Source of the DNA: Macrostomum hystrix
Lineage: Eukaryota > Animalia > Platyhelminthes
Length of the DNA stretch: 64,000 nt
Assembly: GCA_950097015.1 (NCBI GenBank)
Contig: CATNEN010000007.1
Span: 1,488,001-1,552,000 of the forward strand
Reading direction: 5' to 3'
Below are positions 3,203-59,049 of this stretch, piece by piece. Position 1 is the first letter of the stretch. Each line of letters opens with the position of its first letter. A program made the translations under genes and the position numbers. The notes below the pieces were generated by a model that was not told the origin of the DNA, ran no database searches, and saw only the letters and a program-made list of their open reading frames with translations.

Positions 3203-3856
3203 ACAAATCCCACTGTCCCGAATCCCTCTTTCTCAAATCCCACTGTCCCGAATCCCTCTTTCTCAAATCCCACTGTCCCGAATCCCTCTTTCTCAAATCC
3301 CACTGTCCCGAATCCCTCTTTCTCAAATCCCACTGTCCCGAATCCCTCTTTCTCAAATCCCACTGTCCCGAATCCCTCTTTCTCAAATCCCACTGTCCCG
3401 AATCCCTCTTTCTCAAATCCCACTGTCCCGAATCCCTCTTTCTCAAATCCCACTGTCCCGAATCCCTCTTTCTCAAATCCCACTGTCCCGAATCCCTCTT
3501 TCTCAAATCCCACTGTCCCGAATCCCTCTTTCTCAAATCCCACTGTCCCGAATCCCTCTTTCTCAAATCCCACTGTCCCGAATCCCACTGTCCCGAATCC
3601 CTCTTTCTCAAGTCCCACTGTCCCAAATCCCACTGTCCCGAATCCCTCTTTCTCAAATCCCACTGTCCCGAATCCCTCTTTCTCAAATCCCACTGTCCCG
3701 AATCCCTCTTTCTCAAATCCCACTGTCCCGAATCCCTCTTTCTCAAATCCCACTGTCCCGAATCCCTCTTTCTCAAATCCCACTGTCACAAATCCCACTG
3801 TCCCAAATCCCACTGTCCCAAATCCCACTGTCCCAAACCAACTATCCCAAATCCTA
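3203..3856. repeat. 30-bp minisatellite (two 15-bp subunits) caaatcccactgtcccgaatccctctttct
   Basis: About 20 near-perfect units; repeat ORFs on both strands. Confidence 0.97.
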
Positions 3857-5337
3857 AAATCCAACCTCTCGAACCCCCTCCCCCACTCAATGCAAATAGT
3901 TCAATCCTTGTCTTTTCCAACTTCCAGTTCTCCCTTTGAACTCTGCCCCAGCCTCCGATGGCGCGTGCAAAAGCGATTTCCCTGATTAGAGACCATCCGA
4001 TGCGCCTCTTGGCCGATCCCAACGGGTGGTCTATTGGTGCCCAGAGCCATCGCGGGATGGGGAGAATGGGAAGAAATTGCAGGCCAGGAGGCCGGCCGGT
4101 TATCGCGGTGTTTAACAATCTCCCAGCGGGGAAGCTGTGTCCACTCCACTGCGGACAGTGTGGTAGCGGCCTTTGAGTTCGCGTGCAACATGAAATCTGT
4201 CACCTCCGTGATCCGTCATCACCATCAGTCGCAGTCCGTTGCAGAATCTTCTTTCGCATTGGCATCCCGCTGCTCCTCTCGACTCTTGCTGTTTAGTTTC
4301 TTTCAGTCTCTCGGCTTCATCTGCTGTTTTTTGGAATTGCCGGAGTCAGGTCTCAGACTCCTGAGTTGATGAGGCTGGGCCAGATGGTCGCACAAGAGGG
4401 TGACCCTTCTGCACATAGACTAATGGTGCTTCATGCTTCAAATCTGTGAATATCTTTTTGAGCATAGATGCGAGTGCCTATGGAGTAGTTTCCTTCAGCC
4501 AATTTTATCTTTAATTTGATTTACTTAAAGAAAAAGATTTTTTTGAAAGATAGAAAAATTATGAGGAATAGTTTTCTGTCGAGTGTCTCCTTTTAGCTGA
4601 ACAATGTCTCTCTCTCTCTGTCTCTAATAAATAATCTTTTGATTTGAGACGCGTACTCAGGCTCAACGGGAGTCGGCCAAATGTCCGTGCCGTCTCGAGT
4701 GCCGCCTCGCCGATCCTCCTCGACTGTGGGTCGGCGCAAATTGGCCCCATCTGCCGTCTAACAGGTTCCCCGCGCTGCGGAGCACAAATGGAAGCTCTTT
4801 GAGTTGATTGGGAGCTCATGATTTCTGCGCTATTGCGCTAATCACCCCAGCCACCCGTCAGTTCCCCTACCTGATGAAGAAGGCAATGCTGTACACAACA
4901 GCGAGCTTGAAAGCACTCCCCACAAACCTGCCTTTACACATCCTCCCGGCTCAACTCTTCTGGCGATCTGCAGGGGAAGATGCTCGGGTGGTCTGTCATC
5001 CCCACCCACGCCACTCTTATCCTCAGTGCCTCTAATTACTTTCTCGGCTTTAAAAACTTGTCTTCTCAGGCCGGGGCTCCCCAGTCCTCACAGTTTCTCG
5101 AGAGCTGCCTTGACTGAAGAGGAATCTGCGGACTGGGGCCTAGAATTACTTGGCGAGTGCTCTGCACCACCTTGCTAAGTAAATCTCATAAGGATTTGAG
5201 AGTCCACATTTAGCCGAGCTTAGTGCATACACTCCACAGCCAAGTCTGTTTGTTGCTTTCGGACGGGGCGTGCCATTGCCGCCCAGACACTGCTCGCATT
5301 CGCCTAAATCCAGCTCCCTGGCCCTTTCAACACTTCT

Positions 5338-6752
5338 TCTCATTTCTCCCGTGTCTCATCTCTCCCCTGTCTCATCTCTCCCATGTCTCATCTCTCTCGT
5401 GTCTCATCCTTCCCCTGTCCCATCTTTCCCCTGTCTCATCCTTCCCCTGTCTCATCCTTCCCCTGTCTCATCTATCCCCTGTCTCATCTTTCCCCTGTCT
5501 CATCTCTTCCCTGTCTCATCTCTTCCCTGTGTCATCTTTCCCGTCTCATCTCTCCCGTGTCTCATCTCTCTCGTGTCTCATCTCTCTCGTGTCTCATCTC
5601 TCCCCTGTATCATCTCTCCCCTGTATCATCTCTCCCCTGAATCATCTTTTCCCTGTCTCATCTCTCCCCTGTCTCATCTCTCCCCTGTATCATCTTTCCC
5701 CTGTCTGTCTCATCTCTCCCCTGTATCATCTCTCTGGTGTCTCATCTCTCCCATGTCTCATCTCTCTCGTGTCTCATCCTTCCCCTGTCCCATCTTTCCC
5801 CTGTCTCATCCTTCCCCTGTCTCATCCTTCCCCTGTCTCATCTATCCCCTGTCTCATCTTTCCCCTGTCTCATCTCTTCCCTGTCTCATCTCTTCCCTGT
5901 GTCATCTTTCCCGTCTCATCTCTCCCGTGTCTCATCTCTCTCGTGTCTCATCTCTCTCGTGTCTCATCTCTCCCCTGTATCATCTCTCCCCTGTATCATC
6001 TCTCCCCTGAATCATCTTTTCCCTGTCTCATCTCTCCCCTGTCTCATCTCTCCCCTGTATCATCTTTCCCCTGTCTGTCTCATCTCTCCCCTGTATCATC
6101 TCTCTGGTGTCTCATCTCTCCCATGTCTCATCTCTCTCGTGTCTCATCCTTCCCCTGTCCCATCTTTCCCCTGTCTCATCCTTCCCCTGTCTCATCCTTC
6201 CCCTGTCTCATCTATCCCCTGTCTCATCTTTCCCCTGTCTCATCTCTTCCCTGTCTCATCTCTTCCCTGTGTCATCTTTCCCGTCTCATCTCTCCCGTGT
6301 CTCATCTCTCTCGTGTCTCATCTCTCTCGTGTCTCATCTCTCCCCTGTATCATCTCTCCCCTGTCTCATCTCTCCCCTGTATCATCTTTCCCCTGTCTGT
6401 CTCATCTCTCCCCTGTCTCATCTCTCTGGTGTCTCATCTCTCTGGTGTCTCATCTCTCTCGTGTCTCATCTCTCTGGTGTCTCATCTCTCTGGTGTCTCA
6501 TCTCTCTCGTGTCTCATCTCTCTGGTGTCTCATCTCTCTCGTGTCTCATCTCTCCCCTGTCTCATCTCTCCCCTGTCTCATCTCTCCCCTGTCTCATCTC
6601 TCTCGTGTCTCATCTCTCTCGTGTCTCATCTCTCCCTTGTCTCACCTCTCCCCTGTCTCATCTCTCCCCTGTCTCATCTCTCCCCTGTCTCATCTCTCCC
6701 CTGTGTCATCCCTCACGTGTCTCATCGCTCCCATCTTATCTCTCCTGTCTCA
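5338..6752. repeat. 16-bp minisatellite (gtctcatctctcccct) with a 370-bp higher-order period
   Basis: 16-aa periodic ORFs; identical ORF starts at 5737 and 6107 are 370 bp apart. Confidence 0.95.
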
Positions 6753-8208: not shown

Positions 8209-8895
8209 GCAGTAGCGATTTCTAAATATTCGCACATGTCGCTGACAGTACAAAAATAGAAATTGAAAACTTGTGCAAGCTCGTTTCGGACCAGAAAGTG
8301 TCGGTCACACAGCCGCTAATTTTTATCAAGTACCTATTTAGGCCACATAAAATAGTTTCACCCGAATTTTGCTTGGCTGGTTATTAAAGTTGGCACGCCA
8401 GACTGCATCTGTGGTGCTCCACTTGTTGTAATTGCTTCCAAACTGGTGCGGTGAGTGGGCCCCCATCTGCTGATAGATTTGCCATTGACAAGCTTGGCTA
8501 TAGGTTTAAGCTCAATCGACTGAAATTACAACTATGCGTCTTATGGCTTTTATCAATGCAATTGTTCAGCCTGACAAGCATCACATTTAGAAATTGAGTA
8601 GAACATCTGGACTCAATTGAGTGCCGCGGCTGTGTTTACAACATTTGAGCACACCAATAAGCTGCCGTGTTGCCTATTTGGCATATGACTCCGTGAATCT
8701 TAGATTGGATCGCGAAGATCCGATCTGGTCTCTGGGTTGAGAAAGTCTGCAACTTCTTGAGGAGACAATTTCTGAGTTAGGCGAGTGAGGATGAGATTGT
8801 AAGAATACTCAAATGGGGAATAAACTCACTAAATTCGATTTTATCGCTTATCAACAATATTGGCCTGGCGCGCAACACAATGCATGACTGGCAGC

Positions 8896-9710
8896 TTGTG
8901 AGCAGTGTTTGTGAGCAGTGTTTGTGAGCAGTGTTTGTGAGCAGTGTCTGTGAGAAGTGTTTGTGAGCAGTGTTTGTGAGCAGTGTCTGTGAGCAGTGCT
9001 TGTGAGAAGTGTTTGTGAGCAGTGTTTGTGAGCAGTGTCTGTGAGCAGTGTTTGTGAGCAGTGTCTGTAAGCCGTGTCTGTGAGAAGTGTTTGTGAGCAG
9101 TGTTTGTGAGGAGTGTTTGTGAGCAGTGTCTGTGAGCATTGTTTGTGAGCAGTGTTTGTGAGCAGTGTCTGTGAGCAGTGCTTGTGAGAAGTGTTTGTGA
9201 GCAGTGTTTGTGAGCAGTGTCTGTGAGCAGTGTTTGTGAGCAGTGTCTGTAAGCCGTGTCTGTGAGAAGTGTTTGTGAGCAGTGTCTGTGAGCATTGTTT
9301 GTGAGCAGTGTTTGTGAGCAGTGTTTGTGAGCAGTGTCTGTGAGCAGTGCTTGTGAGAAGTGTTTGTGAGCAGTGTTTGTGAGCAGTGTTTGTGAGCAGT
9401 GTTTGTGAGCAGTGTCTGTAAGCCGTGTCTGTGAGAAGTGTTTGTGAGCAGTGTTTGTGAGCAGTGTCTGTGAGCAGTGTCTGTGAGCAGTGTCTGTGAG
9501 CAGTGTTTGTGAGCAGTGTTTGTGAGCAGTGTCTGTGAGCAGTGTCTGTGAGCAGTGTCTGTAAGCTGTGTCTGTGAGCAGTGTCTGTGAGCAGTGTTTG
9601 TGAGCAGTCTCTGTGAGCAGTGTCTGTGAGCAGTGTCTGTAAGCCGTGTCTGTGAGCAGTGTCTGTGAGCAGTGTCTGTGAGCAGTGTTTGTGAGCAGTG
9701 TTTGTGAGCA
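8896..9710. repeat. 13-bp minisatellite gtgagcagtgt(t/c)t
   Basis: Directly visible; 13-aa periodic ORFs 8777..9760 and 8851..9711. Confidence 0.96.
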
Positions 9711-15348: not shown

Positions 15349-16627
15349 AAACATTTTCCCAGCAGATCCCAAAAATATGTTTCTTATAAGGTCCTAAAAG
15401 ATTTGGCCCTATAGATCCCAAAATGTGTGTCCTTTTTCTGTCCCATTAGATCCCCAAACATCGTTCTAATCAGATCCCAAAATTCCAGTTTCCTTATGAT
15501 TTCTCTATTTTAAGATCCAAAGTTTTACCTTCGATTTAGATTCAAAGAAATTATCCCATTTTAAATGGTGGTCAACTCATTATTGTTATTGTATTATTGT
15601 TGTTGTCTGCAACTATGTTCCAAGCTGCAAACTACAAAACGGGATAATGCATAATAAAGTTAGGGATATTTTTCCCACGTGAGAGCCGGATGCAGTCGCG
15701 TGTTGAATTGGCCCCTCACGGAAAGATCCCCAAACAAATATTTGTGTCTCCGAGGCCGCAGCAGAGAGTCCAATTGAAGATTCTTTTAGAAGAGAGTTGG
15801 GCAAGAGCCCCTTATAATTTTTTTCACTTTAAGTATAGAGTAGAGGGAGAGTAGCGGTGAGTAGGACGGGGGTCAGGCGGTTCCCGGTGACCAGGGCAGG
15901 CATGTGCCGCCCAGTCCCTGTCCCCTCACTATACTGAATTCACGAGAATACGGAGCAGCCTCACGCCTGACTGATAAAGTGAAGAGACAAAAGTTTTTTT
16001 TGGATAGAAAGAGACATTGCGCCATGCAGACACGAGAGCCAAATGTCTTTTAATCCCAAACAGTGTCTGTCCGTGTCTGCAAAAAAGCACGCCATTTTTG
16101 GCTTCTTCGAGTGGGTAAGATGGGACCCGCCTAGAGATAGGAGGCAAATGCCAGGTGCGGCACGGCGCGTCACTGCTGAGTTCACGTCCATATCTATGCT
16201 CAAAGAGGATGAGTACTAAAAGCACTAGGTCGCGATGCGGCAACATGTGTCCATTTGCTTTTGTTCTGCAGTCGTTGATTTATAAAAAAAGCAGACTTTG
16301 AGACAGGCACAAATCGAGATCTAGATCCTGTCCGATAAGAAGTTCCAATTTGTGAAATCAGTCTGCTTAGTAAGCTTATATAGTAAGAAATCAGTGCACC
16401 TTTCCTACCATAGTTGCACAGCCTCATTCATCGGGATTTAGTTTGTGCATTGTTAATCATGTCTGAGCTGTCTTATTCAGCATTGCTTGGTCACAGCTCC
16501 CGGAAGCTGTCTTTCACATTCTGCTTGCAGGTAGGAGGGAGGGAATGGGAATTCACTTTTGGAGTGTTGTGACCAGTTGTTGTTTAGCACTGGGTGACGG
16601 CTTGGAGTGCAGAACGGTAGGAGGAGA

Positions 16628-17570
16628 GATAGGTGAGCGGGAGAGATGGGTGAGCGGGAGAGATGGGTGAGCGGGAGAGATGGGTGAGCGGGAGAGATGG
16701 GTGAGCGGGAGAGATGGGTGAGCGGGAGAGATGGGTGAGCGGGAGAGATGGGTGAGCGGGAGAGATGGGTGAGCGGGAGAGATGGGTGAGAGGGACAGAT
16801 GAGTGAGAGGGAGAGATGGGTGAGCGGGAGAGATGGGTGAGAGGGAGAGATGGGTGAGAGGGAGAGATGGGTGAGCGGGAGAGATGGGTGAGAGGGAGAG
16901 ATGGGTGAGAGGGAGAGATGGGTGAGAGGGAGAGATGGGTGAGCGGGAGAGATGGGTGAGAGGGACAGATGGGTGAGAGGGACAGATGGGTGAGCGGGAG
17001 AGATGGGTGAGAGGGAGAGATGGGTGAGCGGGAGAGATGGGTGAGAGGGACAGATGGGTGAGAGGGACAGATGGGTGAGAGGGACAGATGGGTGAGCGGG
17101 AGAGATGGGTGAGCGGGAGAGATGGGTGAGAGGGAGAGATGGGTGAGAGGGAGAGATGGATGAGAGGGAGAGATGGGTGAGAGGGAGAGATGGGTGAGAG
17201 GGAGAGATGGGTGAGCGGGAGAGATGGGTGAGAGGGACAGATGGGTGAGAGGGACAGATGGGTGAGCGGGAGAGATGGGTGAGCGGGAGAGATGGGTGAG
17301 AGGGAGAGATGGGTGAGAGGGAGAGATGGATGAGAGGGAGAGATGGGTGAGAGGGAGAGATGGGTGAGAGGGAGAGATGGGTGAGCGGGAGAGATGGGTG
17401 AGAGGGACAGATGGGTGAGAGGGACAGATGGGTGAGCGGGAGAGATGGGTGAGCGGGAGAGATGGGTGAGAGGGAGAGATGGGTGAGCGGGAGAGATGGG
17501 TGAGAGGGACAGATGGGTGAGAGGGACAGATGGGTGAGCGGGAGAGATGGGTGAAAGGGAGAGATGGGTT
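16628..17570. repeat. 17-bp purine-rich minisatellite gagatgggtgag(c/a)ggga
   Basis: Directly visible; 17-aa periodic ORF 16553..17635. Confidence 0.96.
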
Positions 17571-24788: not shown

Positions 24789-25766
24789 GAAACCTGTGGG
24801 GTGGGGCTGGCCAAGTTGTGAGATGGATGCGCCAGCCAACCATGACCCGTTTGAGTCGGTTTGGGGTGGGTGATCGTGGGGTGGGGGGCTACTCAGTGAC
24901 CGCCGCATCGGAGCTCACGAGCTCAACATGTTTAGCCAAGGGTCGCGGCGAGCAACTTGGCGCGTTGGCCAATGACAGAGAAGCTGGGGGGGTTGCTGCC
25001 GGGGCAGGTCCAGGATGTGCTTGACTGGGGCATGCTGCTCCAAGATACTCAGGCGGGTGATTCTTTAAAGATTCCGCTAAGCTTCACTTAACTGTCAAAA
25101 ACCCGTTGTTGTCATCACATTTGCTAAAACATTTGCTATTAGCACATTTTTGTTATGCATTAAATCTAGTGTGACAGTTATGTTTTTTTGGTGTCAACTT
25201 ATTCGCGCCCTAATAAATCACGTGAATCGAAATTTATGATTTCACAAATTTGTGAACACATTATTGACAGTTACACCTGTCAATCGCAATATCGTGTAAC
25301 TGTATCATATTTCTACTTTACGTTTTGTTAAGAAAAATCAAAGGCAATAAAGCATTAGAGATAGTTAACAAATTCCAGATCCCAAATCCCGCTGATTCCC
25401 CTAATCCCTTGCAATAGCTCACTCCTTAAAACTCTCAATGTGCTGTAGCTGTGGGCATCACTTTCAATGCATTGATTATTTTTCCTGACAGCTCGGGATA
25501 CAGATTGAGCCAGAGCAGTGGCAGGAATGTCAGAAAAAAAGAGAAGATTTGGGATAAGCCATTGCCGTCCCCATTAGGGATCGATAACCTGATGCTCGTG
25601 GGATCAAGAAATCGATCAGAAAGGCGGGTGGGATCAGGAAAACTTTGGGAAGGAGATATACAGAGGAATGCGAGACAGCCAAATGATGATAAGGATTTGA
25701 GAAGTTTTTGGCAGTTTTTGGGGAGTTTTAGTATTTCCAAGAAATTCTTAAAAGAGGGGAGATTTT

Positions 25767-26574
25767 GGGAAACAAGTGGCACAATCATGGGATACAAGTG
25801 GCACAATCATGGGATACAAGTGGCACAATCATGGGATAAAACTGGCACAATCATGGGATACAAGTGGCACAATCATGGGATAAAACTGGCACAATCATGG
25901 GATACAAGTGGCACAATCATGGGATACAAGTGGCACAATCATGGGAAACAAGTGGCACAATCTTGGGATACAAGTGGCACAATCATGGGATACAAGTGGC
26001 ACAATCTTGGGATACAAGTGGCACAATCATGGGATACAAGTGGCACAATCATGGGATACAAGTGGCACAATCATGGGATAAAACTGGCACAATCATGGGA
26101 TACAAGTGGCACAATCATGGGATAAAACTGGCACAATCATGGGATACAAGTGGCACAATCATGGGATACAAGTGGCACAATCATGGGAAACAAGTGGCAC
26201 AATCTTGGGATACAAGTGGCACAATCATGGGATACAAGTGGCACAATCTTGGGATACAAGTGGCACAATCATGGGATACAAGTGGCACAATCATGGGATA
26301 CAAGTGGCACAATCATGGGAAACAAGTGGCACAATCTTGGGATACAAGTGGCACAATCATGGGAAACAAGTGGCACAATCTTGGGATACAAGTGGCACAA
26401 TCATGGGATACAAGTGGCACAATCATGGGATACAAGTGGCACAATCATGGGATACAACTGGCACAATCATGGGATAAAAGTGGCACAATCATGGGATACA
26501 AGTGGCACAATCATGGGATACAAGTGGCACAATCATGGGATACAAATGGCACAATCATGGGAAACAAGTGGCAC
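25767..26574. repeat. 22-bp minisatellite gggatacaagtggcacaatcat
   Basis: Directly visible; 242-bp (11-unit) block duplication shown by identical ORF starts at 25864 and 26106. Confidence 0.96.
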
Positions 26575-26940
26575 CCTTTAGGATATGAAATGGCTCCCTC
26601 TCGGATAAGAAATGGCACCCTCTTGTAAATGAAATGGCACCCTCTTGTAAATGAAATGGAACCCTCTTGGAATAGAAATGGTACCCTCTTGTAAATGAAA
26701 TGGCACCCTCTTGTAAATGAAATGGCACCCTCTTGGAATAGAAATGGCACCCTCTTGGAATAGAAATGGCACCCTCTTGGAATAGAAATGGCACCCTCTT
26801 GGAATAGAAATGGCACCCTCTTGGAATAGAAATGGCACCCTCTCGGAATAGAAATGGCACCCTCTTGGAATAGAAATGGCACCCTCTTGGAATAGAAATG
26901 GCACCCTCTTGGAATAGAAATGGCACCCTCTTGTATAAGA
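26575..26940. repeat. 22-bp minisatellite aaatggcaccctcttggaatag
   Basis: Directly visible; contiguous with the previous array. Confidence 0.95.
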
Positions 26941-27182
26941 AATGGCACCTTAGGATAAGAAATGGCACCCTAGGATAAGAAATGGCACCCTAGGATAAGA
27001 AATGGCACCCTAGGATAAGAAATGGCACCCTAGGATAAGAAATGGCACCCTAGGATAAAAAATGGCACCCTAGGATAATAAATGGCACCCTAGGATAAGA
27101 AATGGCACCCTAGGATAAGAAATGGCACCCTCTCGGATAAGAAATGGCACCCTAGGATAAGAAATGGCACCCTAGGATAAGA
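26941..27182. repeat. 20-bp minisatellite aaatggcaccctaggataag
   Basis: Directly visible; contiguous with the previous array. Confidence 0.95.
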
Positions 27183-35159: not shown

Positions 35160-36230
35160 AACACGAGTGTAACTTATCCCGCTCGATATCCCGCTCGATA
35201 TTCCGATCGATATTCCGACAGATAATGTAGTGTACTTAAACAAAAGCTAAAGAGAACAAAAAAGGAAAACAAAAACTCTCTTTATTTTTATTTTACTCAA
35301 TTTAGTTTTTAATAATAATTATCACTTTCAATAATTTTTTCTCCAGAACAAAACAGTTGAAATGCATTTTATTTCATAAAATACTCTTGCTACAGATGAA
35401 TGATGCATTTCGGGTCAGGTGGTGATTTAACTGTCGGGACGATGAATGAACTGTCGGGATGATGCATTAACTGTCGGGATGTTGCAATAACTGTCGGGTC
35501 AGGTGGTGATTTTACTGTCGGGACGATGAATTAACTGTCGGGATGATGCATTAACTGTCGGGATGTTGCAATAACTGTCGGGTCAGGTGGTGATTTTACT
35601 GTCGGGACGATGAATTAACTGTCGGGATGATGCATTAACTGTCGGGATGTTGCAATAACTGTCGGGTCAGGTGGTGATTTTACTGTCGGGACGATGAATT
35701 AACTGTCGGGATGATGCATTAACTGTCGGGATGTTGCAATAACTGTCGGGTCAGGTGGTGATTTTACTGTCGGGACGATGAATTAACTGTCGGGATGATG
35801 CATTAACTGTCGGACCATCGTCCCGACCGTTAATCAATCATCCCGACAGTTATTTAAAGGCCTGTCCCGACTGTTAATGCATCGTCCCGACCGTTAATCA
35901 ATCATCCCGACAGTTATTTGAAGACCTGAGCCTACAGTTGATGCATCGTCCCTGGTGTTCATCGATCATCCTGAACTGTAGCTGGATGTTTTTATTATGT
36001 TCTGTAATGCATTTATGCCGTAAAGAGGTTCAAATTGCAATTAGAACATTCATCTGCTTGCTCTTTTCAAATGTAAGTGTTTGTCCCTTTTTATCTTTTT
36101 TTTCCAGCGACCAACCAAGTAGTTCACGGTGATTCATTTGTTTTGCTACATTTAGTTTCATTTAAAAATATCGATCGGAATATCGAGCGGAATATCGAGC
36201 GGAATATCTGTCGGTGAATGTTATATACGT
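35160..36230. mobile_element. Putative non-autonomous foldback/TIR DNA element (about 1.07 kb) with internal inverted arrays
   Basis: Left end ...atcccgctcgatattccgatcgatattccgacagata (35176-35225) matches the reverse complement of the right end atatcgatcggaatatcgagcggaatatcgagcggaatatctgtcgg (36168-36213). Interior has an 84-bp array (35412, 35496, 35580, 35664, 35748) followed by inverted copies (35815-35930). No transposase ORF. Confidence 0.65.
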
Positions 36231-36916
36231 AAAAGAAACACGAAGTCCAAAGAGAGATAACGAAAAAACAAATTAAACAATTTTTTAAACAATACATTGA
36301 TCAAACTTAATAGATTATTACTTTATTTAGTTTGTTTAGTTTTTATTGAAAAAATATATAAATTTACCAACAATCATGACCAGTTATCATAATGTTCTTG
36401 GAATATTCTACGTGTATCGAGTTTTAATTTCGAAAATATGTACTGATTTTTCTTTTAGCGACTATAGATGGCTTTCCGCAAAATAATTTGCGAAATTAGC
36501 CGTTACATTTCTTTGCGTAGAAGAACATTGCAGTTATTTGACTACTTACTATTGTCTATTAAAAGAAAATTAATCTATCATATAATATAGCTTTTATATT
36601 TTTGTTCTGTATGCCCCTTCATCATTTCTGTAGAGTCAGTCCAAACCAATTATGCAATAATAAAAGCAATTATGTCTAGTAATCATGCATTCAGCATCTA
36701 TCTTATTATGCTTTGCTGACACTAACTAACCAACCATTGTTTATATTTTTTAAGAGTTTCATTCCGAAATTCTAATAAATTTACGAGTGTTAAAGAACTC
36801 TTGACTTTGAAATACCAAAACAAATTACAAATTACAGTCCACATATGCCATCAAATATGGTAAAAAATGGCAGGCACAGAGCCTGCCATTGTGATATTTT
36901 CTTTGATAAATATTTT

Positions 36917-37230
36917 GGGGCTGAGTGGCAGAGCACCTAGTGCATTTGCCTCTTTCACTTGCTTGATTCTATGGCAAGGCCACATTCATTTGGGTTGCTG
37001 CCATGGAGAGATGGCTTGGGGGCTTGTCCTGCAATATCTGCCTTTGAGGGCCAACCTCCATGGTACACTGTCTGAGAATGAGAAATTTAAGGTAGATGTA
37101 TATACCTATGTGAGTATATGCCTATGGATAGTATCTATGTGCATTTGTGCTCATAAAATCAAAGAGTCAGCAAAATGGGCAGAATTGCCTCCTTGCTATG
37201 GGTTTAGTGGCCCAATTGATGTGCCTGCAG
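36917..37230 (-). repeat. Dispersed repeat, copy A (CpG-free); homologous to 49965-50240
   Basis: Reverse complement shares ordered blocks gaggcaattctgcc, tacatct..tttctcat, cagtgtac, gaggttggccct, cccaaatgaatgtggcct and gctctgccact with the SEL1L-intron copy. Confidence 0.85.
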
Positions 37231-38561
37231 CCCTCTTATGATAAAGTAATAATCATTGCAGTATCATTATATAATTTGAAAATACAACAATTATACATAC
37301 AAAGGTTAATTATATTTTTTAACAGATTCAAAGTTTTTTCTATGATGCAAGAGTGCCTAAGCATTGAACAGCCCAGATTTTTTATGTTGCCTTTTGTGTA
37401 AAAAACAAAGTTTATTTTTTTCTTGATAAGCTATCAAAATCAAAAAGTTAAATAGTAGTGACAACAATTGTTTTCAATCTTTAAGATATAATATTTAAAA
37501 TTTATTTTTATATGTCTCATAAAATTTATTTCTCATATTAGTTTATGAGTTTATGAGTCATATGAGTTTATTTCTCATAAAATATTGCATATACAGAAAA
37601 AATCCTATTCAGCAGAGCTATAGAAATTCAATGGTATAAAATAGTTTAAGTCAATTCTATCTTTAAAAAATAAAGTCTGTTATTCAACTATTATAAATAA
37701 TATAGTTTCCCCATTAATGTTTTACGACCTTTAATGCTGTTTAAAAAACTAAAAATAGAATCAGGTATATCCTTCCTGTAGACAATCTGTCTCGTTGCTT
37801 ATATACAGAGTCCAAAGGATTAACCAATAGGCTCTAGCCTCAGTTATAGAACATAGATTATTTTTTATCAGTCATGTAGTAAACTACCATTATATATAAA
37901 TTATGTACTATTAGTTTGTAGGCCTTAGTATATAATTTACTATAATGAAAAATAGTAAAAAAGTGTTTTTGCTATGCATAATTCAACATATATTTTGGTT
38001 CACACTTAGGTAATATTAATAATCAATAACTAAAAAATTTGATTAACATAAAATCAACATGAAAAATAGTGGTACTGGTACCTAACAAAACTTATTTTAT
38101 ATTCAATCAATTTAGCTAGCTGTAGTTAGTGCTAGTAATTTGTACATTGACAATAATTCTACAGTACTTGACAGTGTCTTACAATCACTTGGTCACATTG
38201 AAAGTACAGCTTCTCTGACATCATAGTGCAGTGTACACACTGCTTTGTGGTTTACAGTAGAACCCAGTTAATCTATATATTTACCATTACCAATACCAAA
38301 GGATCAAACTCTGTATCATCTTCCAGGAGTTAAAAGTGTCTTAAAATCTAGATATTATTTTTATTAAACTATTGTTTATAGTTTATATGTGAATGTATAA
38401 ATGAGATATGTGAATGTGCTGCGAAAACGGCAAGAGTGTTGATATTATTTTTGTCAGTAAATAGTAATTGTTTGGGAATTAATGCTTTAAAAACAAACTT
38501 GGGTGTGGCAGTAAGACAAATTCGAAATGCACTTTTATTCGTTGTTACTCTTTGATTTGAG

Positions 38562-38860
38562 GCAGAGGTTGTAGCCTAGTGGTTAGGGCGTCGGACTCAT
38601 GACTTGAAGGTCGGGGGTTCGATTCCCGACTCCACTGGAACAATTTGCGTCCTTTAGCAAGACACTTAACTCTGCATTGCTTCAGTTCACCCAGCTGTTA
38701 AATGGGTACCAGCATCAGCTGGGATAATTGAAGGTGGGTGTGGCGTCCCTCCAGTCCGTGGACTGAACAGCTGTACGCAGCCTTCAGATGCGCCCCGCAT
38801 TAGCTACGGCTGTGCTGTCGGCTGCACATCTGACCCAATTGGGGCAGGTGTAATCAATTA
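38562..38860 (+). mobile_element. Full-length tRNA-derived SINE with a CORE-like central domain
   Basis: A box TAGCCTAGTGG (38572-38582) and B box GGTTCGATTCC (38616-38626). Then cctttagcaagacacttaact...cagctgttaaatgggtacc, which resembles the MIR/CORE domain, and a 3' tail with a gcccc...ggggc stem. Two further copies lie in this window. Confidence 0.8.
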
Positions 38861-39295
38861 TTGATTAAGTTTCTAATTACTAGTTCGTTTATGTGTTAGA
38901 TTGCTAAATTACAAATCTATTTTTCGCAACAAAAAATAAGTTCGCTTTTTTCGGCGAAGCAAAATAGAAGTGATGAGTCGTTTGGGAAGGATGGAGATCG
39001 GCTGCTGAGTACGCACTATTGGAGGTTGAGCAAAATGGGATTAGATGGCGGGGAGAGGAAAACTGGACTGGGAACATTTGGATGAGAGCGGGCGGCGGGG
39101 GATGGGGCAGCCAGCTGGGATGTCCGGACGGGAGTCAGGCAAGTGCGCACTGAGCAGTCGACTTTTTTAACCAAAGAAAAATGGAAAGAGATTTGGAGAC
39201 AGAGATAAGGCTCAGTAAGAGAGAGACTCTAGTCGAGCAAATCCCCGAGGTCTTCGTCGACCCCTTCGCCATTGCATCCTTCTCTCTTCTTAGTC

Positions 39296-39303: not shown

Positions 39304-40404
39304 CAGGCGTGCAGAATATTTTTGCTTTCTTTGCTTACTCTGCTTTGCTTAAGTTGGCAATTTTGCTTGCGTATTCATCCCTCTCCCTTCCTCCCACTGC
39401 TCAAAAATAATTCTGCACTTTTTCGAATCTAGCATCCACTGTAGAAGATCTCTACCTTTTTTGCAAAAGCTTTAACCTTATTTATTTACCGATCGGCGTT
39501 TTGAAAAGGTCATTTAGGTAAGTTTTCAAATCAACAGTTTTTTAATTAAGTCAACGTTTTTGCATTCAACCGCTAGCGTGTGTAGAGCTGTGTGTACTTT
39601 TTCTCGTGTTGCAGGCGTCCTAGATAAGAATTTTATCGCATGTAAAAAATTTTACGGAGAGTCCCTTTCTTGCATCGGACGCTACTGGATGTTGGGCTGT
39701 GAGCACAGACTCGGACTTGGATAAATGTTTCGTCCAGAAAAATTGTGTTGCTGGCCTCGCTGCGCAAGATTTACGAGAGAAACGCATTTGCGTTGATTAG
39801 ATTTGGGAACATTTTTTTGCTAATCCCAAGTTAACAAATCCGAATATGAGATTGCCTAGGCTTAGTCATACCTACCACCCAGCCCGCCACCTTGCTTTAA
39901 TTCACCACACCCATTTTTAACTGCATGTATACTCTTTGGCCATCATCAAACTCGGTTGGTTTATCTACAGATCAACCATGCTCACTATAAAATTCGCCTA
40001 CCCTATTTCTCTCAAACGCACAAAAATGACTACTCGAAAACACTCCTCATATTGTGTACCGTATTATTTTTATTTGAGCAGAACAAGCAGCTTACTGGTT
40101 AATCAATTGGGCTTTCAGTTTGATTGCATTTTTAATGATAATTAAATTAAAATATGAGACATGAGAAAATGCACTCCGCGAAATCATTGAGCAGCTTAAA
40201 AATAGAATATTTAATTTTATGAAGCTTTTCTTAATCTGGTTGATCTCCAGAAATCAAAATCTGCATGCGAATACACAGCGAGACAGTGTTAAGCAATTTT
40301 TGTTGATTAAGCTGCAATTCTCTTCTTTCAGTGGCTTGTCTTTCAAATTGATATAAAAAGTGTGACAAAAAGCTGAACTTAGCGGACCCTGACATCGAAT
40401 TTAA

Positions 40405-42565
40405 ATGTCTGACGAGCCACAGCTAGAGCAGCAGCAGCAGCACGAGATGACAGAACAGGAGCAGCAAACTGGCGATCAGCTGCAGCAGCAGTTTACTCAA
40501 GAGGAACTTACCCGGCGACAGCAGCAAGAGTGAGTGCAGTGCTATGTTTGAGATCCTTCTGCGGTCAGCGCTTTGGCTTCTGAGGCACTATAGTTTTTCC
40601 TCGTCCTCAGACTAGACAGCCATTATCTCAGATCCTCTGATTAAAAAGCCATCCTCCCAGGTCCTCATATGGAGCAGCCATCCTCCCAGATGCTCAGGTT
40701 AAGCAGTCCTCCTCCCAGATGCTCAGGTTAAGCAGTCATCCTCCCAGATGCTCAGGTTAAGCAGTCATCCTCCCAGATGCTCAGGTTAAGCAGTCATCCT
40801 CCCAGATGCTCAGGTTAAGCAGTCATCCTCCCAGATGCTCAGGTTAAGCAGTCATCCTCCCAGATGCTCAGGCTAAGCAGTCATCCTTCCAGATGCTCAG
40901 GTTAAGCAGTCATCCTCCCGGATGCTCAAGTTGAGCAGCTATCCTCCCAGATCCTTCTCAGACAATATTTTATGCAACTGTTACCTTCTCAATTGTTTCT
41001 CGGCTCTCCGCCTAGATCTCAGATTCGCGAAGCCCTGAAGCAGCAGACGGCCATCCAGTTCCGACAGTACGCCACCGAGCAGCACCCCAACGATGCAGCC
41101 AAGCAGCTAGAGCTCATTAGCCAGCTGCAGGAGCAGCACTATCAGCAGTACATGAGTCAGGTGTACCTCATGCAGCTGCGTCACCAGGAGGAGCAGGCCA
41201 AGCAGCTGCGCATGAAGCGCAGGCAGCTTAGCACTGCAAGCAGCGGCGTCGCTGGTGACGGCGCGGACGTCGAAGATGGAGGAGTTGGAGAACCTGGAAC
41301 TACGGCAGCTGGCGAAGGAGAAGACAATACTGCCGCTCCGGCGATGGCAGTTCTACCACTGTCTAGCGGCGACGCTGAGGCGGAAGGCTTTGACGGTGCG
41401 CGCTGGTTTTATTTAAATATCATCCTCACTCCGCTACCCACCTCACTCCGCCACCCACCTCGCTCCGCCACCCACCTCACTCCGCTACCCATCTCACTCC
41501 GCTACCCACCTCACTCCACTACCTACTTTACGCAACTTCCACGTGACTCTGTAAACGTGCTGATATTAAATTACTGATAAGATGACTGCAGTTTAAATAT
41601 TTGCGTCCTGTCACAACACTCAATAATTTTGCAGAGCCTCTACCAGAAATGCCGCAACTCATTCCGGCCAGCGTGTGGACTCGTCAAAATATAGCAGAGT
41701 TTAAAAAGGAGATACTTCGTGATAGCAAGCACTGCTGTATCAAGATCGGCTCTCTGGCTACGGCCACAGTGAGTGCTGCGAACTTACAGTGCATCTGACC
41801 TTTCTGAGTAACTTTGTTTTTATTTAGTGGATAAAAATAATTAATACATACCGTTAATCCAGGTACGCGTGCCAACCCACGAAGAGGGAACCTGCCTTGT
41901 CTGGGAATTCGCAACTGATCACTACGATCTGGGATTTGGCGTCTATTTCGAATGGACCATCTCGCCCTCGGACAAGGTGACGGTGCACATTAGCGAGAGC
42001 TCGGACGAGGAGGACGACGAAGAAGGAGAGGAAGGAGAACAGACTCGCGGAGATGGTGGTAAATTTTCTGGGAAAGCCACCGGTGTTCATTTGTTTTACG
42101 GACGACATCACTGCGCCACCAACCTCACTCTGTCGGTTGAGGTTCACTGCACTCCGTCGGTTGAGCTGCACTCCGTCGCCCACCTCACTCCGTCGCCCAC
42201 CTCACTCCGTCGCCCACCTCACTCCGCCGCCCACCTCACTCCGCCGCCCACCTCACTACGCCGCCCATCTTACTCCGTCACCCACCTCACTCGGTCGCAA
42301 ATCTCACTCCATCTCAAACCTCACTTCAATTTTCCTTGCAGATGTCGAACGTCCTGAAGATCCCGAACGAGGTTCACGTCGACGCCGTGATGACGACAAG
42401 GCCATTGACGAAATCATACCAGTGTACAGGCGCGACTGTCACGAAGAAGTCTACTGCGGCAGCCATCAGTACCCTGGCAAGGGTGTGTACTTGTTGAAGT
42501 TTGACAATTCCTATTCGTTGTGGCGCTCGAAGTGGCTCTATTACCGCGTGTACTACACCAGGTAG
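40405..42565 (+). CDS. ACBD3: ACBD3/GCP60 (TMED8-like) Golgi adaptor: Q-rich domain plus GOLD domain, 5 exons, 352 aa, no ACB domain seen
   Basis: Exons 40405-40529, 41016-41395, 41635-41768, 41863-42058 (alternative donor 42055) and 42342-42565; total 1059 nt in frame. Motifs [23 protein letters not shown]...[17 protein letters not shown] (Q domain), [37 protein letters not shown] and [37 protein letters not shown] (GOLD). Confidence 0.9.
40670..40950. repeat. 29-bp intronic minisatellite cagtcatcctcccagatgctcaggttaag
   Basis: Directly visible, in the first coding intron of ACBD3. Confidence 0.93.
41425..41525. repeat. 18-bp intronic repeat cacctcactccgc(t/c)accc
   Basis: Directly visible; same family as 42115-42325. 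Confidence 0.85.
42115..42325. repeat. 18-bp intronic repeat cacctcactccg(t/c)cgccc
   Basis: Directly visible, in the last ACBD3 intron. Confidence 0.88.
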
Positions 42566-43054: not shown

Positions 43055-43873
43055 TGAAGATTTTTGTGTTCTGATTTTTGTCCAACTTGTCAACAGCACC
43101 TAAGAGGCATTCAATGAAATTTTAACAGACGGAAAAAGTTTTAGTTTTGAGTATCTTTTAATTGTGTCGCACCATATTTTCGGTGTATAAGAGCATGTTT
43201 CTCTTCTTGACCGTATTCTATTTATAAAATTGCTAGTTATTTAGCTCATCTTTCCCAAGTTTTGTGTTTTGCTTGTAGAGTTTCTAAAATAAAATAAAAT
43301 GAATTTTTTGAAAAAGCAAATTGTGTATTTCATCTTTTTTCCCCATAAATTTATTTCAGTTTTATTAAGAAACAAATTGAATTTGAATAAGAAAGCCATT
43401 TTAATGATTGTTGCAGTTCTGTATTTATTGTAACACCTGTGACTGTTAATCAGATTTCTATTGTGCACTAGTCTGCTATAATATGTTTATATCAAATCCC
43501 ACATTCGTTGGAATCCATTCAGATTATTAATACTCGTAGTATTTGTATGTATTTATAGTCGTATTACATGCTTTGTGTCAGTATGAATAACCATTTGCAC
43601 TGAATATTTGTGTAAGAAGTTTATTTGACACAATTCATATTTCCTACCTAGTCAGCAAGTTTTTTTCTATTTCGTTCTGTTGTTTTTGCTTGCAAAGTTT
43701 TAAGACGAGGAAAACAGCTTACAACAATGCACGAAATAAATGTTTTATAATATCGGCGTGTTGTATCCCAAAGCTTGACTGCTTTTGTATTGTCTATTTT
43801 TAGGCGAATTTTGTTTTACTTCTTTTTCAAAAATATCTAGGCGTATTTAGGCTACTGATACTACTGATTTAAA

Positions 43874-55659
<11,786 letters not shown>

Positions 55660-56665: not shown

Positions 56666-57233
56666 GATGCAAATGTTGGGAGGGATTTCCCACATTATTA
56701 CGAGAAGCTCAATTAAGTTCGCAGTACTTCGCAGTTCTACGCTCTTCTGCTTTAAACCGCTGAGTTTCTAGTCAGAAGATGACCAAGCTTTTTCATGCGT
56801 TTATTGTTGCGGATGTGATCACTATGACACTTCATATGAGCTGGCGAGTCACCAGAACGATGGTTATTTACAGATAGTTTCCAAACTAGTTCTAGCACAT
56901 CTCTTCATTTCTCTCTTTGTCTATCTCTCTCAAATCCATGGCCATCCGCTGGTGTGTGGTCGATTTGTGTGAATTCGTTAAATAAAATGATCAGTTATGC
57001 TGTGTAGACACTTCATTTCATGTTTAACCTATTCGCTTTATTGAAACCTATAAATACTTATATGAGCTCATTCTTTTGTCTGCTCTTAGTAATGCCAATC
57101 TGCTTTACAGATTGTCTGTTTGCTGATGCTCACGGATTCCTGTTGAGGAATTAAGTAACATTTATTTTGTTCTCAAATACTTTAACACTTGTTTTCGTCC
57201 TTTCTCACGTGTTCACGTGTAACGTTAAATAGG

Positions 57234-58490
57234 GGTGTCATGTGTTAGATATTGCTGTCATGTGTTAGATATAGCTGTCATGTGTTAGATATAGCTGTCA
57301 TGTGTTAGACATGGATGTCATGTGTTAGATATAGCTGTCATGTGTTAGATAGAGCTGTCATGTGTTAGATATAGCTGTCATGTGTTAGACATGAATGTCA
57401 TGTGTTAGACATGGGTGTCATGTGTTAGATATAGCTGTCATGTGTTAGATATAGCTGTCATGTGTTAGATATAGCTGTCATGTGTTAGATATAGCTGTCA
57501 TGTGTTAGATATAGCTGTCATGTGTTAGATATAGCTGTCATGTGTTAGATATAGCTGTCATGTGTTAGATATAGCTGTCATGTGTTAGATATAGCTGTCA
57601 TGTGTTAGATATAGCTGTCATGTGTTAGATATAGCTGTCATGTGTTAGATATAGCTGTCATGTGTTAGATATAGCTGTCATGTGTTAGATATAGCTGTCA
57701 TGTGTTAGATATAGCTGTCATGTGTTAGACATGAATGTCATGTGTTAGACATGGGTGTCATGTGTTAGATATAGCTGTCATGTGTTAGATATAGCTGTCA
57801 TGTGTTAGATATAGCTGTCATGTGTTAGATATAGCTGTCATGTGTTAGATATAGCTGTCATGTGTTAGATATAGCTGTCATGTGTTAGATATAGCTGTCA
57901 TGTGTTAGACAGGGATGTCATGTGTTAGACATGAATGTCATGTGTTAGACATGGATGTCATGTGTTAGACATGGATGTCATGTGTTAGACATGGATGTCA
58001 TGTGTTAGACATGGATGTCATGTGTTAGATATAGCTGTCATGTGTTAGACATGAATGTCATGTGTTAGATATAGCTGTCATGTGTTAGATATAGCTGTCA
58101 TGTGTTAGATATAGCTGTCATGTGTTAGATATAGCTGTCATGTGTTAGACAGGGATGTCATGTGTTAGACATGGATGTCATGTGTTAGACATGGATGTCA
58201 TGTGTTAGACATGAATGTCATGTGTTAGACATGGATGTCATGTGTTAGACATGGATGTCATGTGTTAGACATGAATGTCATGTGTTAGACATGGTTATCA
58301 TGTGTTAGACTTAGATGTCATGTGTTAGACATGGATGTCATGTTTTAGGCAGGGATGTCATGTGTTAGGCAGGGATGTCATGTGTTAGACAGGGATGTCA
58401 TGTGTTAGACAGGGATGTCATGTGTTAGGCAGGGATGTCATGTGTTAGGCAGGGATGCCATGTGTTAGACAGGGATGTCACTGTTAGACA
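57234..58490. repeat. 20-bp satellite tgtcatgtgttagatatagc (about 60 units)
   Basis: Directly visible. Confidence 0.98.
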
Positions 58491-59049
58491 TTAGTGAATA
58501 TTAGTGATATCATATGTTCGATCTGCATGACACAGTGGCTATTCTGGGTTGAATTATACTGGCACATATTTGTGAGTCCATGACCCGGGTCTTTGAAGAC
58601 TTCGAGACGAGTCGTCCCGCTAAGTCCCTAATCTGCACCTTAGTGTGAGTCAAGAAGGTATTTCAGCGCCAGTAATCTCTGTGCGAAGCCTCTCACAGTT
58701 CATGAAGAGGCGCTTGTGCCATTAGTGAACCGAGAAACGCATTACCTATGGTACCTCAGCAATAGCCGAGCCATGAAACCTACAGCCCAGCGACCACCAC
58801 CTGCTGCCTTCTGTCACTTGCCGCTGACTTCACCTTGGCTTGACCTTGTGTTTTGTGTCAGCGAGTGACATTCTTAGGCCTTTGGACCTGTCCTAATTCA
58901 AATTATCCGCTCCATCGAATAGATAAACTAATAGATTCTACCTGTCTGACATTGACTGATTGATAATAACAGCGGTTATTAAATGAGCTTTGGACTCTTT
59001 TGATGATTCTGGATTGTGTCAGATCATGCGATATCGTCGACATCGAGTG

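Follow-up and report, generated by a model that had tools for sequence, protein, structure and literature searches.

Composition and surroundings of a CpG-void block

The DNA analyzed here (the window) is a 64,000-nucleotide stretch of the Macrostomum hystrix genome. It contains an AT-rich, CpG-void block that carries one copy of a repeat, SINE-1, and is flanked by a foldback-like element and a copy of a second repeat, SINE-2. The nearest downstream gene encodes a GOLD_2 domain, and a second copy of SINE-1 lies in an intron of a SEL1L-like gene. In window coordinates, the features are:

35163..36230, no strand assigned: foldback-like element, CpG-rich, with inverted ends (inverted repeats I1-I11 in this DNA); left neighbour of the block
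36231..36519, no strand assigned: left border, AT-rich, single-copy, CpG-enriched DNA abutting the void (GC 26%, rho(CG) 2.06)
36520..38420, no strand assigned: CpG-void, AT-rich island (4 CpG in 1901 bp, o/e 0.09; C7:1524520-1526420 in the genome)
36915..37231, plus strand: copy A of SINE-1, long subfamily, fully CpG-decayed (nhmmer E 1.2e-69)
38565..38862, plus strand: SINE-2 copy, CpG-intact (Rfam tRNA match at 38565-38634, 32 bits); right neighbour of the block
40331..42565, plus strand: nearest downstream gene, GOLD_2 domain, ACBD3-like (spliced RNA contig; GOLD_2 E 1e-31 and 5e-25)
49967..50216, minus strand: copy B of SINE-1, in the SEL1L-like intron, CpG-intact (nhmmer E 6.5e-58)

Only four CpG dinucleotides (36765, 36784, 37725 and 37793) were found in the block, and none between 36786 and 37724, exactly as counted in the earlier note on this DNA. 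The block has a GC content of 30.0% and a CpG observed/expected ratio (o/e) of 0.094, compared with a typical value of ~0.75 for the M. hystrix genome; at o/e 0.75, ~32 CpG would be expected, and the Poisson probability of four or fewer is ~6e-10. As had also been noted, similarly AT-rich DNA at 43100-43930 (29.4% GC) has many CpG (14, o/e 0.78), and AT-rich unique DNA elsewhere is CpG-normal. The CpG clusters closest to the block end at 36516 on the left, where eight CpG fall within 36411-36516, and begin at 38422 on the right.

The ~1.6 kb of the block beyond the SINE are single copy and as CpG-void as the SINE itself. These unique flanks have a rho(CG) of 0.14 and a rho(TA) of 0.97, as against 0.69-0.83 in stretches of the window used for comparison. 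The block without its SINE (36240-36916 and 37231-38420) has no match in the whole genome other than itself, so that it does not qualify as a repeat domain; the proposal that a repeat domain had been the target was discarded. A search of the block for the terminal inverted or direct repeats of an old transposon returned only chance-level AT-rich matches, and among the RNA contigs mapped to the window, none lies on the block.

Short-read contigs, obtained independently from two runs, cover the block without a single difference and connect it to its flanks. Contig depth is ~67 on the block and ~63 beside it, which is the single-copy level, and the sole contig break is a 23-base overlap within the SINE. 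These findings answer the concern that the block might be a misassembled or contaminant segment. Such an artefact, or editing of the SINE as RNA or cDNA before its insertion, has nothing but the odd composition in its favour, and we regard either as scarcely credible; pre-insertion editing is further opposed by the void in the unique flanks and by changes on both strands of decayed copies.

The foldback-like element has a CpG o/e of 0.95-1.6 and contains internal 84-bp and 20-bp tandem units, with arrays at 35410-35952. The SINE-2 copy is delimited by loose contig ends at 38564 and 38862, and 1 of its 26 CpG cytosines is changed. SINE-2 is tRNA-headed and far more abundant than SINE-1, with a summed contig depth of ~1.4 million compared with ~65 for single-copy DNA. 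The spliced RNA contig places exons of the GOLD_2 gene at 40331-40529, 41016-41394, 41634-41768 and 41863-42058; the island is ~2 kb upstream of the first mapped exon, and RNA contigs begin at ~40331. No ACBP exon, which might have placed the block in an intron, was detected by motif search upstream of this gene, and the exons next to the block show no CpG depletion. Around copy B, Sel1 repeats are encoded in ORFs at 46684-47043, 52570-53055 and 53975-54277.

Direction and context of change in SINE-1

SINE-1 is ~340 bp long and has at least 4,495 copies genome-wide by pattern matching (1 match in the control). At a relaxed threshold only, ARAGORN detects a cloverleaf resembling tRNA-Glu(CTC) at positions 9-84 of the consensus, and an Rfam search of SINE-1 heads gave no tRNA match at E<=0.01; the family is probably a SINE with a tRNA-like head. 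The repeat pair proposed earlier is real, with nhmmer placing copies A and B on opposite strands of the window. Copy B is without the central segment and part of the tRNA-like head, has 1 of 24 CpG cytosines changed and lies in flanks of CpG o/e 0.63. The consensus is 57% GC with 21 CpG. Therefore, copy A lost GC, and the converse possibility, that an AT-rich ancestor had gained GC in copy B, does not hold.

Relative to the consensus, copy A has lost every CpG dinucleotide, 20 of the 40 cytosine positions being changed. CpA>TpA changes were found at 12 of 53 sites (23%), 9 of these 12 in a CA/TG-rich segment that the earlier note had quoted, while CpT was changed at 4 of 38 sites and CpC at 1 of 44 (2%). 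The difference between CpA and CpC has a p value of 0.005. Overall, 37 GC>AT transitions were counted against 4 AT>GC transitions (4/125), with transversions at 18 of 300 positions (6%), in agreement with the claim of one-directional C>T/G>A change from an ancestor rich in GC, concentrated at CpG and secondarily at CpA. Read directly from copy B to copy A, GC>AT transitions number 25 and those in the opposite direction 5, besides 18 transversions, and none of the 12 aligned CpG survives; the first hand counts were about right for the GC>AT changes and the CpG loss, but had undercounted the transversions and reverse transitions.

Fourteen fully decayed SINE-1 copies were found, copy A and 13 elsewhere. 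The comparison set held 81 aligned copies, comprising 57 intact, these 14 and a number of partly decayed copies. Of 100 copies drawn from the 4,495 by transition-blind sampling, 94 retain the probe CpG; ~2% of the 4,495 are fully decayed and >90% are intact. Copy B, once thought to be spared for being intronic, is merely one of this intact majority.

When the decayed copies (n=14) were compared with the intact set (n=57), which is drawn largely from best-scoring BLAST hits and is thereby biased toward few changes, 47% versus 5% of CpG cytosines were changed. Within the CA/TG-rich segment, CpA>TpA changes reached 21.7% versus 2.5%, and beyond it 13.6% versus 2.4% (p=8e-22). The corresponding values were 8.3% versus 3.4% for CpT and 6.1% versus 2.5% for CpC, and partly decayed copies had intermediate rates. 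Thus ordered, decay is strongest at CpG by a wide margin, followed by CpA and then by CpT and CpC. The sense strand of the decayed copies has a C>T rate of 19.9% and a G>A rate of 16.5%, so that both strands were changed. Since the strands are equally affected and the unique flanks are also altered, the changes postdate insertion.

Most CpG sites read TG in some decayed copies and CA in others (5:4 at site 13, 6:6 at site 228, 6:5 at site 128). This mixture indicates that the copies decayed independently and in place. Three losses are common to decayed copies: one at site 64, seen in the six copies inspected first, and two at sites 275 and 298, which the search pattern itself demanded. Descent of the decayed copies as a subfamily from a decayed master was rejected as the main cause, as sites outside these three shared losses are mixed. 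Copy A and the decayed copy at another locus, L043, agree at 12 of 13 sites, which shared ancestry may explain.

CpG-void islands elsewhere in the genome

Within 500 bp of SINE-1, the flanks of 53 intact copies had a median CpG o/e of 0.87, as against 0.195 around 12 decayed copies (MWU p=3.5e-5). Consistent with the earlier view that the change is local, acts on a domain and left the intronic copy intact, decayed copies sit in void domains of 1.4-2.5 kb that have sharp edges and consist of single-copy DNA. These islands are intergenic or gene-adjacent. Those outside the window include:

C13:344407-345805
C24:5247660-5249416
C3:6064727-6066208
C7:10752599-10754191
C33:468472-470942
C24:862784-864544
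C32:2565994-2567563

Among 578 non-tandem 500-bp windows at other loci, which are not a random genome sample, 1.2% have a CpG o/e below 0.2, and the distribution is unimodal with its centre at ~0.75. Void DNA makes up ~1-4% of the sequence sampled. When the 14 island loci were compared all-versus-all with SINE-1 masked, only SINE-2 and a few short repeats were held in common. Hence, the islands do not represent copies of a single element.

Within the void domain of L043, a SINE-2 copy is changed at 14 of 26 CpG, 22 of 49 CpA, 3 of 37 CpT and 7 of 43 CpC sites; two similarly diverged SINE-2 copies elsewhere (L011 and L019) together have changes at 2 of 40 CpG and 8 of 72 CpA sites. Thus unique DNA, SINE-1 and SINE-2 are all affected, and depletion is regional, regardless of sequence family. 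Exceptions were seen in both directions: intact SINE-1 copies occur in CpG-poor flanks at L053 and L046, a decayed copy at L094 has normal CpG in both flanks, and the decayed copy at L043 abuts CpG-rich DNA on one side. A gag-like ORF adjoins L043. The block belongs to a rare class of such short islands (~1.4-2.5 kb), in which C->T change has been far faster than elsewhere.

Decayed copies are about twofold older than intact ones, with mean private transversions of 1.36% versus 0.66% on a clock that carries an unknown offset from source-gene variation. Because of this age difference, part of the rise at CpT and CpC and some of that at CpA reflects age. The islands could thus simply be the oldest neutral DNA, shaped by a genome-wide mutation process biased to CpG and toward AT or by broad methylation in the past, with all other DNA being younger or having escaped exposure. 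In line with such a relic, the three shared CpG losses look subfamily-diagnostic, several island edges coincide with younger insertions (SINE-2 at 38565 and the ORF beside L043), and the two intact, presumably young, SINEs lie in CpG-poor flanks. However, a twofold age gap cannot lift CpG loss from ~5% to ~100%, and no decay is seen in intact copies with matching transversion loads: 12 with an equal total load (3.9% versus 4.0%) have 2.6% of CpA changed, and 11 with a private load no lower than the decayed median have 5% of CpG and 2.8% of CpA changed. The CpA>TpA rate of decayed copies is ~5-6 times that of intact ones, including those of similar transversion age. AT>GC transitions are no higher in decayed copies, AT-rich unique DNA outside the islands is CpG-normal, and the void occupies only a small part of the sampled DNA, yet 77% of the M. 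hystrix genome is non-repetitive (PMC10468722). For these reasons, we consider age an unlikely explanation of the islands.

AT>GC transitions are in fact about half as common in decayed copies (1.8%) as in intact ones (3.4%), as would be expected if mutation were uniform and GC-biased conversion or selection maintained GC and CpG everywhere except in recombination-cold islands. A bias between weak and strong bases does not produce the observed order of contexts, and it would have to suppress CpG transitions ~20-fold across >95% of the genome; edges at a scale of 1.5-2.5 kb are also too sharp. M. hystrix is able to self-fertilise, and selfing, like inbreeding, weakens gene-conversion bias. The sequenced line is strongly inbred (PMC10468722). 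This form of fixation bias is therefore very improbable.

Candidate causes and known systems

Searching the M. hystrix genome with PF00145 identified three genes, whose best solved relatives are DNMT1, DNMT2 and DNMT3. The DNMT1 matches PDB chains at 2e-63, the DNMT3 contains motifs I and IV (GGSPCNELS) together with a Cys finger of the ADD type, and a UHRF1-type SRA domain is encoded at two loci. Of the enzymes that the earlier note had proposed to look for, DNMT1 and DNMT3 are thus both present, whereas the PF00145 matches include no RID/Masc1-like methylase. APOBEC_N had no match in the genome, an absence that is weak evidence, and neither had NAD1, a blank that carries little weight because the control matched nowhere. 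The related M. lignano retains DNMT1 and DNMT3 with low 5-methylcytosine, and the methylation patterns of free-living flatworms are unknown (PMC9246332, PMC11292947).

The islands probably arose through dense, locus-specific germline 5-methylcytosine and its deamination, possibly with some methylation of CpA. In the mechanism that we propose from these substitutions, DNMT3 would lay down dense 5-methylcytosine at chosen loci in the germline, DNMT1 and UHRF1 would keep CpG methylation up, and DNMT3-type methylation outside CG, at CpA, would add the CpA>TpA changes. As 5-methylcytosine deaminates spontaneously to T on either strand, anything within an island would decay jointly and copies outside would remain CpG-rich. 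The islands would be methylated now or would formerly have been, and CpA methylation may lie behind the excess of TpA. Of the options first offered, the methylation-driven one fits the DNMT1, DNMT3 and UHRF1-type genes and the mixed, strand-symmetric CpG>TpG and CpG>CpA changes. Against it, the islands lie outside gene bodies, no RNA contig maps to the block and adjacent exons are not depleted. Canonical invertebrate methylation marks gene bodies, and we know of no established case of substantial CpA methylation in an invertebrate germline.

RIP is recognized by a TpA/ApT index above 0.89, a (CpA+TpG)/(ApC+GpT) index below 1.03, a preference for CpA, directional C>T/G>A change, a RID/Masc1-type C5-methyltransferase-like gene and duplication as the trigger, so that similar copies beyond a length threshold are mutated and unique DNA is spared except for leakage. 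The block has a TpA/ApT of 0.95, in the RIP range, and a substrate index of 1.44, outside it. Change is directional in copy A and likewise in the pooled decayed copies. Repetition did not trigger it, as seen from the intact copies in both samples (94/100 and 57/81) and from single-copy DNA that is equally void, and CpG loss is ~100% compared with 14-22% for CpA. Since >90% of SINE copies are intact, unique flanks are affected and CpG outranks CpA, we favour focal methylation-type decay over RIP, and the RIP-like reading of the earlier note was set aside.

A RIP-like or deaminase system might instead be aimed at chosen domains, for example via small RNAs, and act on double-stranded DNA with a preference for CpG and CpA. 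The strong one-way, context-specific C>T change and the real excess of CpA>TpA over CpT and CpC would suit it, as would the high rank of 5'-pyrimidine contexts (CCA 18%, TCA 15% and CCT 12%, versus GCT 1.6% and ACT 1.1%) and sharp-edged, AT-rich islands that recall RIP-affected regions. Most SINE-1 copies are untouched despite their high mutual similarity, single-copy flanks are altered as much as the repeat, the top context is not CpA, and the enzyme searches above yielded no candidate; we judge this system improbable. Similarly, there is only a slim chance that M. hystrix has a domain-targeted cytosine hypermutation defence of any kind, whether RIP-like, based on a deaminase, or consisting of sufficiently dense CpG and CpA methylation, that inactivates loci of 1.5-2.5 kb. 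Were this so, a locus and its resident mobile elements would be permanently inactivated, and the system would be the first of its kind described in an animal.

Under focal methylation-type decay, the footprints predict germline methylation sites that are rare, short, sharply bounded islands near or between genes rather than gene bodies, and non-CG methylation marked enough to have scarred the DNA with CpA>TpA changes. Among invertebrates, such a distribution of methylation would be out of the ordinary, and it would offer a natural gauge of the mutagenicity of CpA methylation. If the islands proved unmethylated, enzymatic hypermutation would become the leading explanation, a far bigger result.

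Among known systems, APOBEC/AID editing of retroelements likewise produces clustered C>T changes in a retroposon and favours some 5'-pyrimidine contexts, but here both strands are equally changed, unique flanks are altered and no APOBEC_N or NAD1 match was obtained. RIP shares with the islands the many C>T/G>A changes in a repeat copy, a CpA>TpA part, AT-richness and spill into unique DNA. It differs in that here repetition is no trigger, change falls mainly on CpG, the block has a substrate index unlike that of RIP and no RID-type enzyme was found. To our knowledge, RIP does not occur outside fungi. Within them, it acts in ascomycetes, and a RIP-like TpCpG hypermutation acts in basidiomycetes (PMC3318451, PMC12543289).

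The order CpG > CpA > CpT/CpC is also that of mammalian DNMT3 methylation outside CG, and an ADD-finger DNMT3 is encoded here; in M. hystrix, such methylation is deduced solely from substitutions. In mammals, it occurs, mainly at CpA, in oocytes, neurons and stem cells, and we know of no established mutational footprint of CpA methylation of this size in animals. CpG o/e is low in the methylated gene bodies of mosaic-methylated invertebrates. Germline CpG depletion by 5-methylcytosine in vertebrates and in such invertebrates matches the islands in its one-way CpG->TpG/CpA change, on both strands and regionally, with DNMT1, DNMT3 and UHRF1-type genes. Elsewhere, it covers whole genomes or gene bodies, whereas here CpG depletion is seen in rare, AT-rich, intergenic or gene-adjacent islands of 1.4-2.5 kb, adjacent exons keep their CpG and a CpA>TpA component is added.

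The CpG-void block and its surroundings

The window spans C7:1488001-1552000 in an assembly of 42 contigs and 220,453,370 bases. The published Macrostomum hystrix assembly has an N50 of 13,505,968 bases (contig C7) and 22.9% repeats, and the genome paper does not mention CpG, methylation or SINEs (PMC10468722). An earlier note had listed four CpGs in the block at 36520-38420, and dinucleotide counting returned the same four at the same positions (observed/expected ratio [o/e], 0.094; GC, 30.0%). The comparator that it chose, 43100-43930, is as AT-rich as the block and has an o/e of 0.78; that of the whole window is 0.64. By our own arithmetic, four or fewer CpGs against ~32 expected at genome-typical o/e has a p of ~6e-10. 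Among 578 non-tandem 500-bp windows, from loci picked around intact SINE copies, o/e was unimodal near 0.75 and fell below 0.2 in only 1.2%; thus, the block is a true outlier. Outside its SINE, the block is single copy by genome search, with rho(CG) of 0.14 and rho(TA) of 0.97 (window comparison stretches, 0.69-0.83).

A misassembled or contaminant block was ruled out, as short-read contigs from two runs covered it at single-copy depth, showed 0 differences and continued into its flanks. One run, labelled as another organism than the main holder, contained the block and flanks at 0 differences together with a spliced GOLD_2 contig; the run probably derives from the same species or from a mixture of DNA and RNA.

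Features of the window
35163-36230, left of the block: CpG-rich foldback-like element, inverted arms of 62-110 nt, o/e 1.1-1.6
36231-36519: CpG-enriched unique DNA, ~290 bp, single copy, 26% GC, rho 2.06
36915-37231, + strand: copy A of SINE-1, in the block, every CpG changed
38565-38862, + strand: CpG-intact copy of SINE-2, right of the block, Rfam tRNA head (32 bits)
3084-3830, 5263-6300, 8766-9440, 16487-17280, 25608-26550 and 57064-58900: examples of minisatellite arrays

The foldback-like element contains internal 84-bp and 20-bp tandem units that are based on the motif CTGTCGGGA. The adjoining 36231-36519 has twice the expected CpG (8 in 106 bp) and meets the block at a very sharp border. 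SINE-2, a second, tRNA-headed family, had a summed contig depth of ~1.4 million versus ~65 for single-copy DNA, which implies a very high copy number, well above that of SINE-1; several of its copies lie in the retrieved loci. A spliced RNA contig mapped a GOLD_2 (ACBD3-like) gene with exons from 40331 onward, and no RNA contig lay on the block. These data make the block intergenic, ~2 kb upstream of this gene. The ~24 bases of the contig 5' of 40331 that did not align may come from a spliced leader or from a short exon upstream. Exons 40331-40529 and 41016-41394 are separated by an intron holding a 29-bp tandem array of 11 units (40629-40952). Long minisatellite arrays (periods, 12-44 bp) crowd the window as a whole, and some of its low-CpG 1-kb bins (e.g., 26001-27000) fall in them; these are not islands of the block's kind.

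Substitutions in SINE-1 copies

Copy A and copy B, an ordinary intact copy that is intronic to a Sel1-repeat gene, belong to a ~340-bp interspersed repeat, here named SINE-1. Its head forms a tRNA-Glu(CTC)-like cloverleaf by ARAGORN at a relaxed threshold; an Rfam search of SINE-1 gave no match. A 28-base probe in purine/pyrimidine code, and therefore blind to transitions, matched 4,495 places genome-wide versus 1 for a reversed control. The consensus is GC-rich rather than AT-rich (57% GC, 21 CpG); thus, copy A lost GC and copy B did not gain any.

From B to A, 25 GC>AT transitions stood against 5 reverse transitions, with 18 transversions and loss of 12 of 12 aligned CpGs. The one-way change and complete CpG loss described earlier therefore stand. 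Of the tallies made by eye, ~20 forward transitions and ~10 CpGs were near the mark, while ~1 reverse transition and ~8 transversions were too low. Relative to the consensus, copy A had all CpGs changed, with CpA>TpA at 12/53, CpT at 4/38, CpC at 1/44, AT>GC at 4/125 and transversions at 18/300; 9 of the 12 CpA changes lie within the CA/TG-rich segment that the earlier note quoted.

Copy A is not unique, since further decayed copies were found. Five others in the first 60 loci had lost 24-50% of CpG cytosines at ordinary transversion levels. A second search pattern, restricted to copies with site 275 changed from CpG to CpA and site 298 to TpG, had 42 exact matches genome-wide, of which 20 were retrieved, 8 with flanks. 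Overall, decay was complete in 14 copies and partial in 10, and 57 were intact.

Changes in decayed and intact SINE-1 copies
CpG cytosines changed: decayed 47% (ceiling ~50%), intact 5%
CpA>TpA outside the CA/TG-rich segment: decayed 13.6%, intact 2.4% (p=8e-22)
CpA>TpA within the CA/TG-rich segment: decayed 21.7%, intact 2.5%
CpT>TpT: decayed 8.3%, intact 3.4%
CpC>TpC: decayed 6.1%, intact 2.5%
AT>GC transitions: decayed 1.8%, intact 3.4%

Partly decayed copies gave values in between. CpA>TpA exceeded CpT and CpC changes about twofold, in decayed copies only, so that the objection raised in the earlier note, of CpA changes no commoner than other transitions, does not apply. The original observation is thus confirmed and extended.

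Place, age and ancestry of decay

The 500-bp flanks had a median CpG o/e of 0.195 for 12 decayed copies versus 0.87 for 53 intact copies (MWU, p=3.5e-5), and only 2 intact copies had flanks below 0.35. Each void domain is sharply bounded and 1.4-2.5 kb long.

Examples of void domains
C13:344407-345805
C24:5247660-5249416
C3:6064727-6066208
C7:10752599-10754191
C33:468472-470942
C24:862784-864544
C32:2565994-2567563

Domain-to-domain comparison revealed no common sequence besides SINEs. Several domains adjoin GC-rich stretches, some coding, that kept their CpGs, such as a profilin ORF that lies ~250 bp outside the L035 island. A SINE-2 copy within the L043 island, from a family unrelated to SINE-1, had 14/26 CpG and 22/49 CpA changed, versus 2/40 and 8/72 pooled over two similarly diverged copies elsewhere. 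The process at that island acts on place, not repeat family. A 393-aa open frame with DUF1759 (L043 2140-3318, + strand) starts ~300 bp past the right edge of this island; DUF1759 is of a kind that occurs in gag regions of Pao/BEL-type LTR elements.

Private transversions were about twice as frequent in decayed as in intact copies (1.36% versus 0.66%). Twofold age can account for the ~2.4-fold rise in CpT and CpC changes, but neither for the almost complete loss of CpG nor for the excess at CpA. In 12 intact copies matched on total transversions (3.9% versus 4.0%), CpA change was 2.6%; in 11 intact copies whose private transversions equalled or exceeded the decayed median, CpG change was 5% and CpA change 2.8%. 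The case that decay is not due to age alone is strong but not absolute, as the transversion clock carries an offset from source-gene variation.

Three CpG losses were common to the first six decayed copies examined, two of them later demanded by the search pattern. Other CpG sites mostly had mixed TG and CA outcomes, indicating that each copy decayed after insertion. Both strands were changed (C>T, 19.9%; G>A, 16.5%), which excludes pre-insertion editing at the RNA or cDNA stage. Two islands hold two SINE-1 copies each (L092, 456-808 and 1578-1913; L091, 1538-1900 and 2286-2633), of which one is fully decayed and the other partly so (0.32-0.35 of its CpG cytosines changed), as though the two had arrived at separate times in an island that went on mutating.

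Methylation machinery and comparison with fungal RIP

A PF00145 search found three genes, whose best solved relatives are DNMT1 (2e-63), DNMT2 and DNMT3. At the DNMT3 locus, an ORF encodes an ADD-type cysteine finger, and catalytic motifs I and IV are also present; two loci carry SRA (UHRF1-type) domains. Between the finger and catalytic-motif ORFs lies an intact, presumably intronic, SINE-1 copy (L064 1891-2246; C11:3925951-3926306). According to reviews, M. lignano retains DNMT1 and DNMT3, and its 5mC level is low (PMC9246332, PMC11292947, PMC10658182).

Judged from substitution patterns, the best explanation is probably focal cytosine methylation in the germline, at CpG with a CpA component, after which the methylated cytosines would be deaminated. 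Enzymatic hypermutation targeted to domains is improbable; searches for APOBEC_N and NAD1 gave no match, which is weak evidence of absence. In the fungal sense, the RIP-like reading does not hold. Of five defining features examined, it fails on four: dependence on repeats, preferred context, RIP substrate index and presence of a RID-type enzyme.
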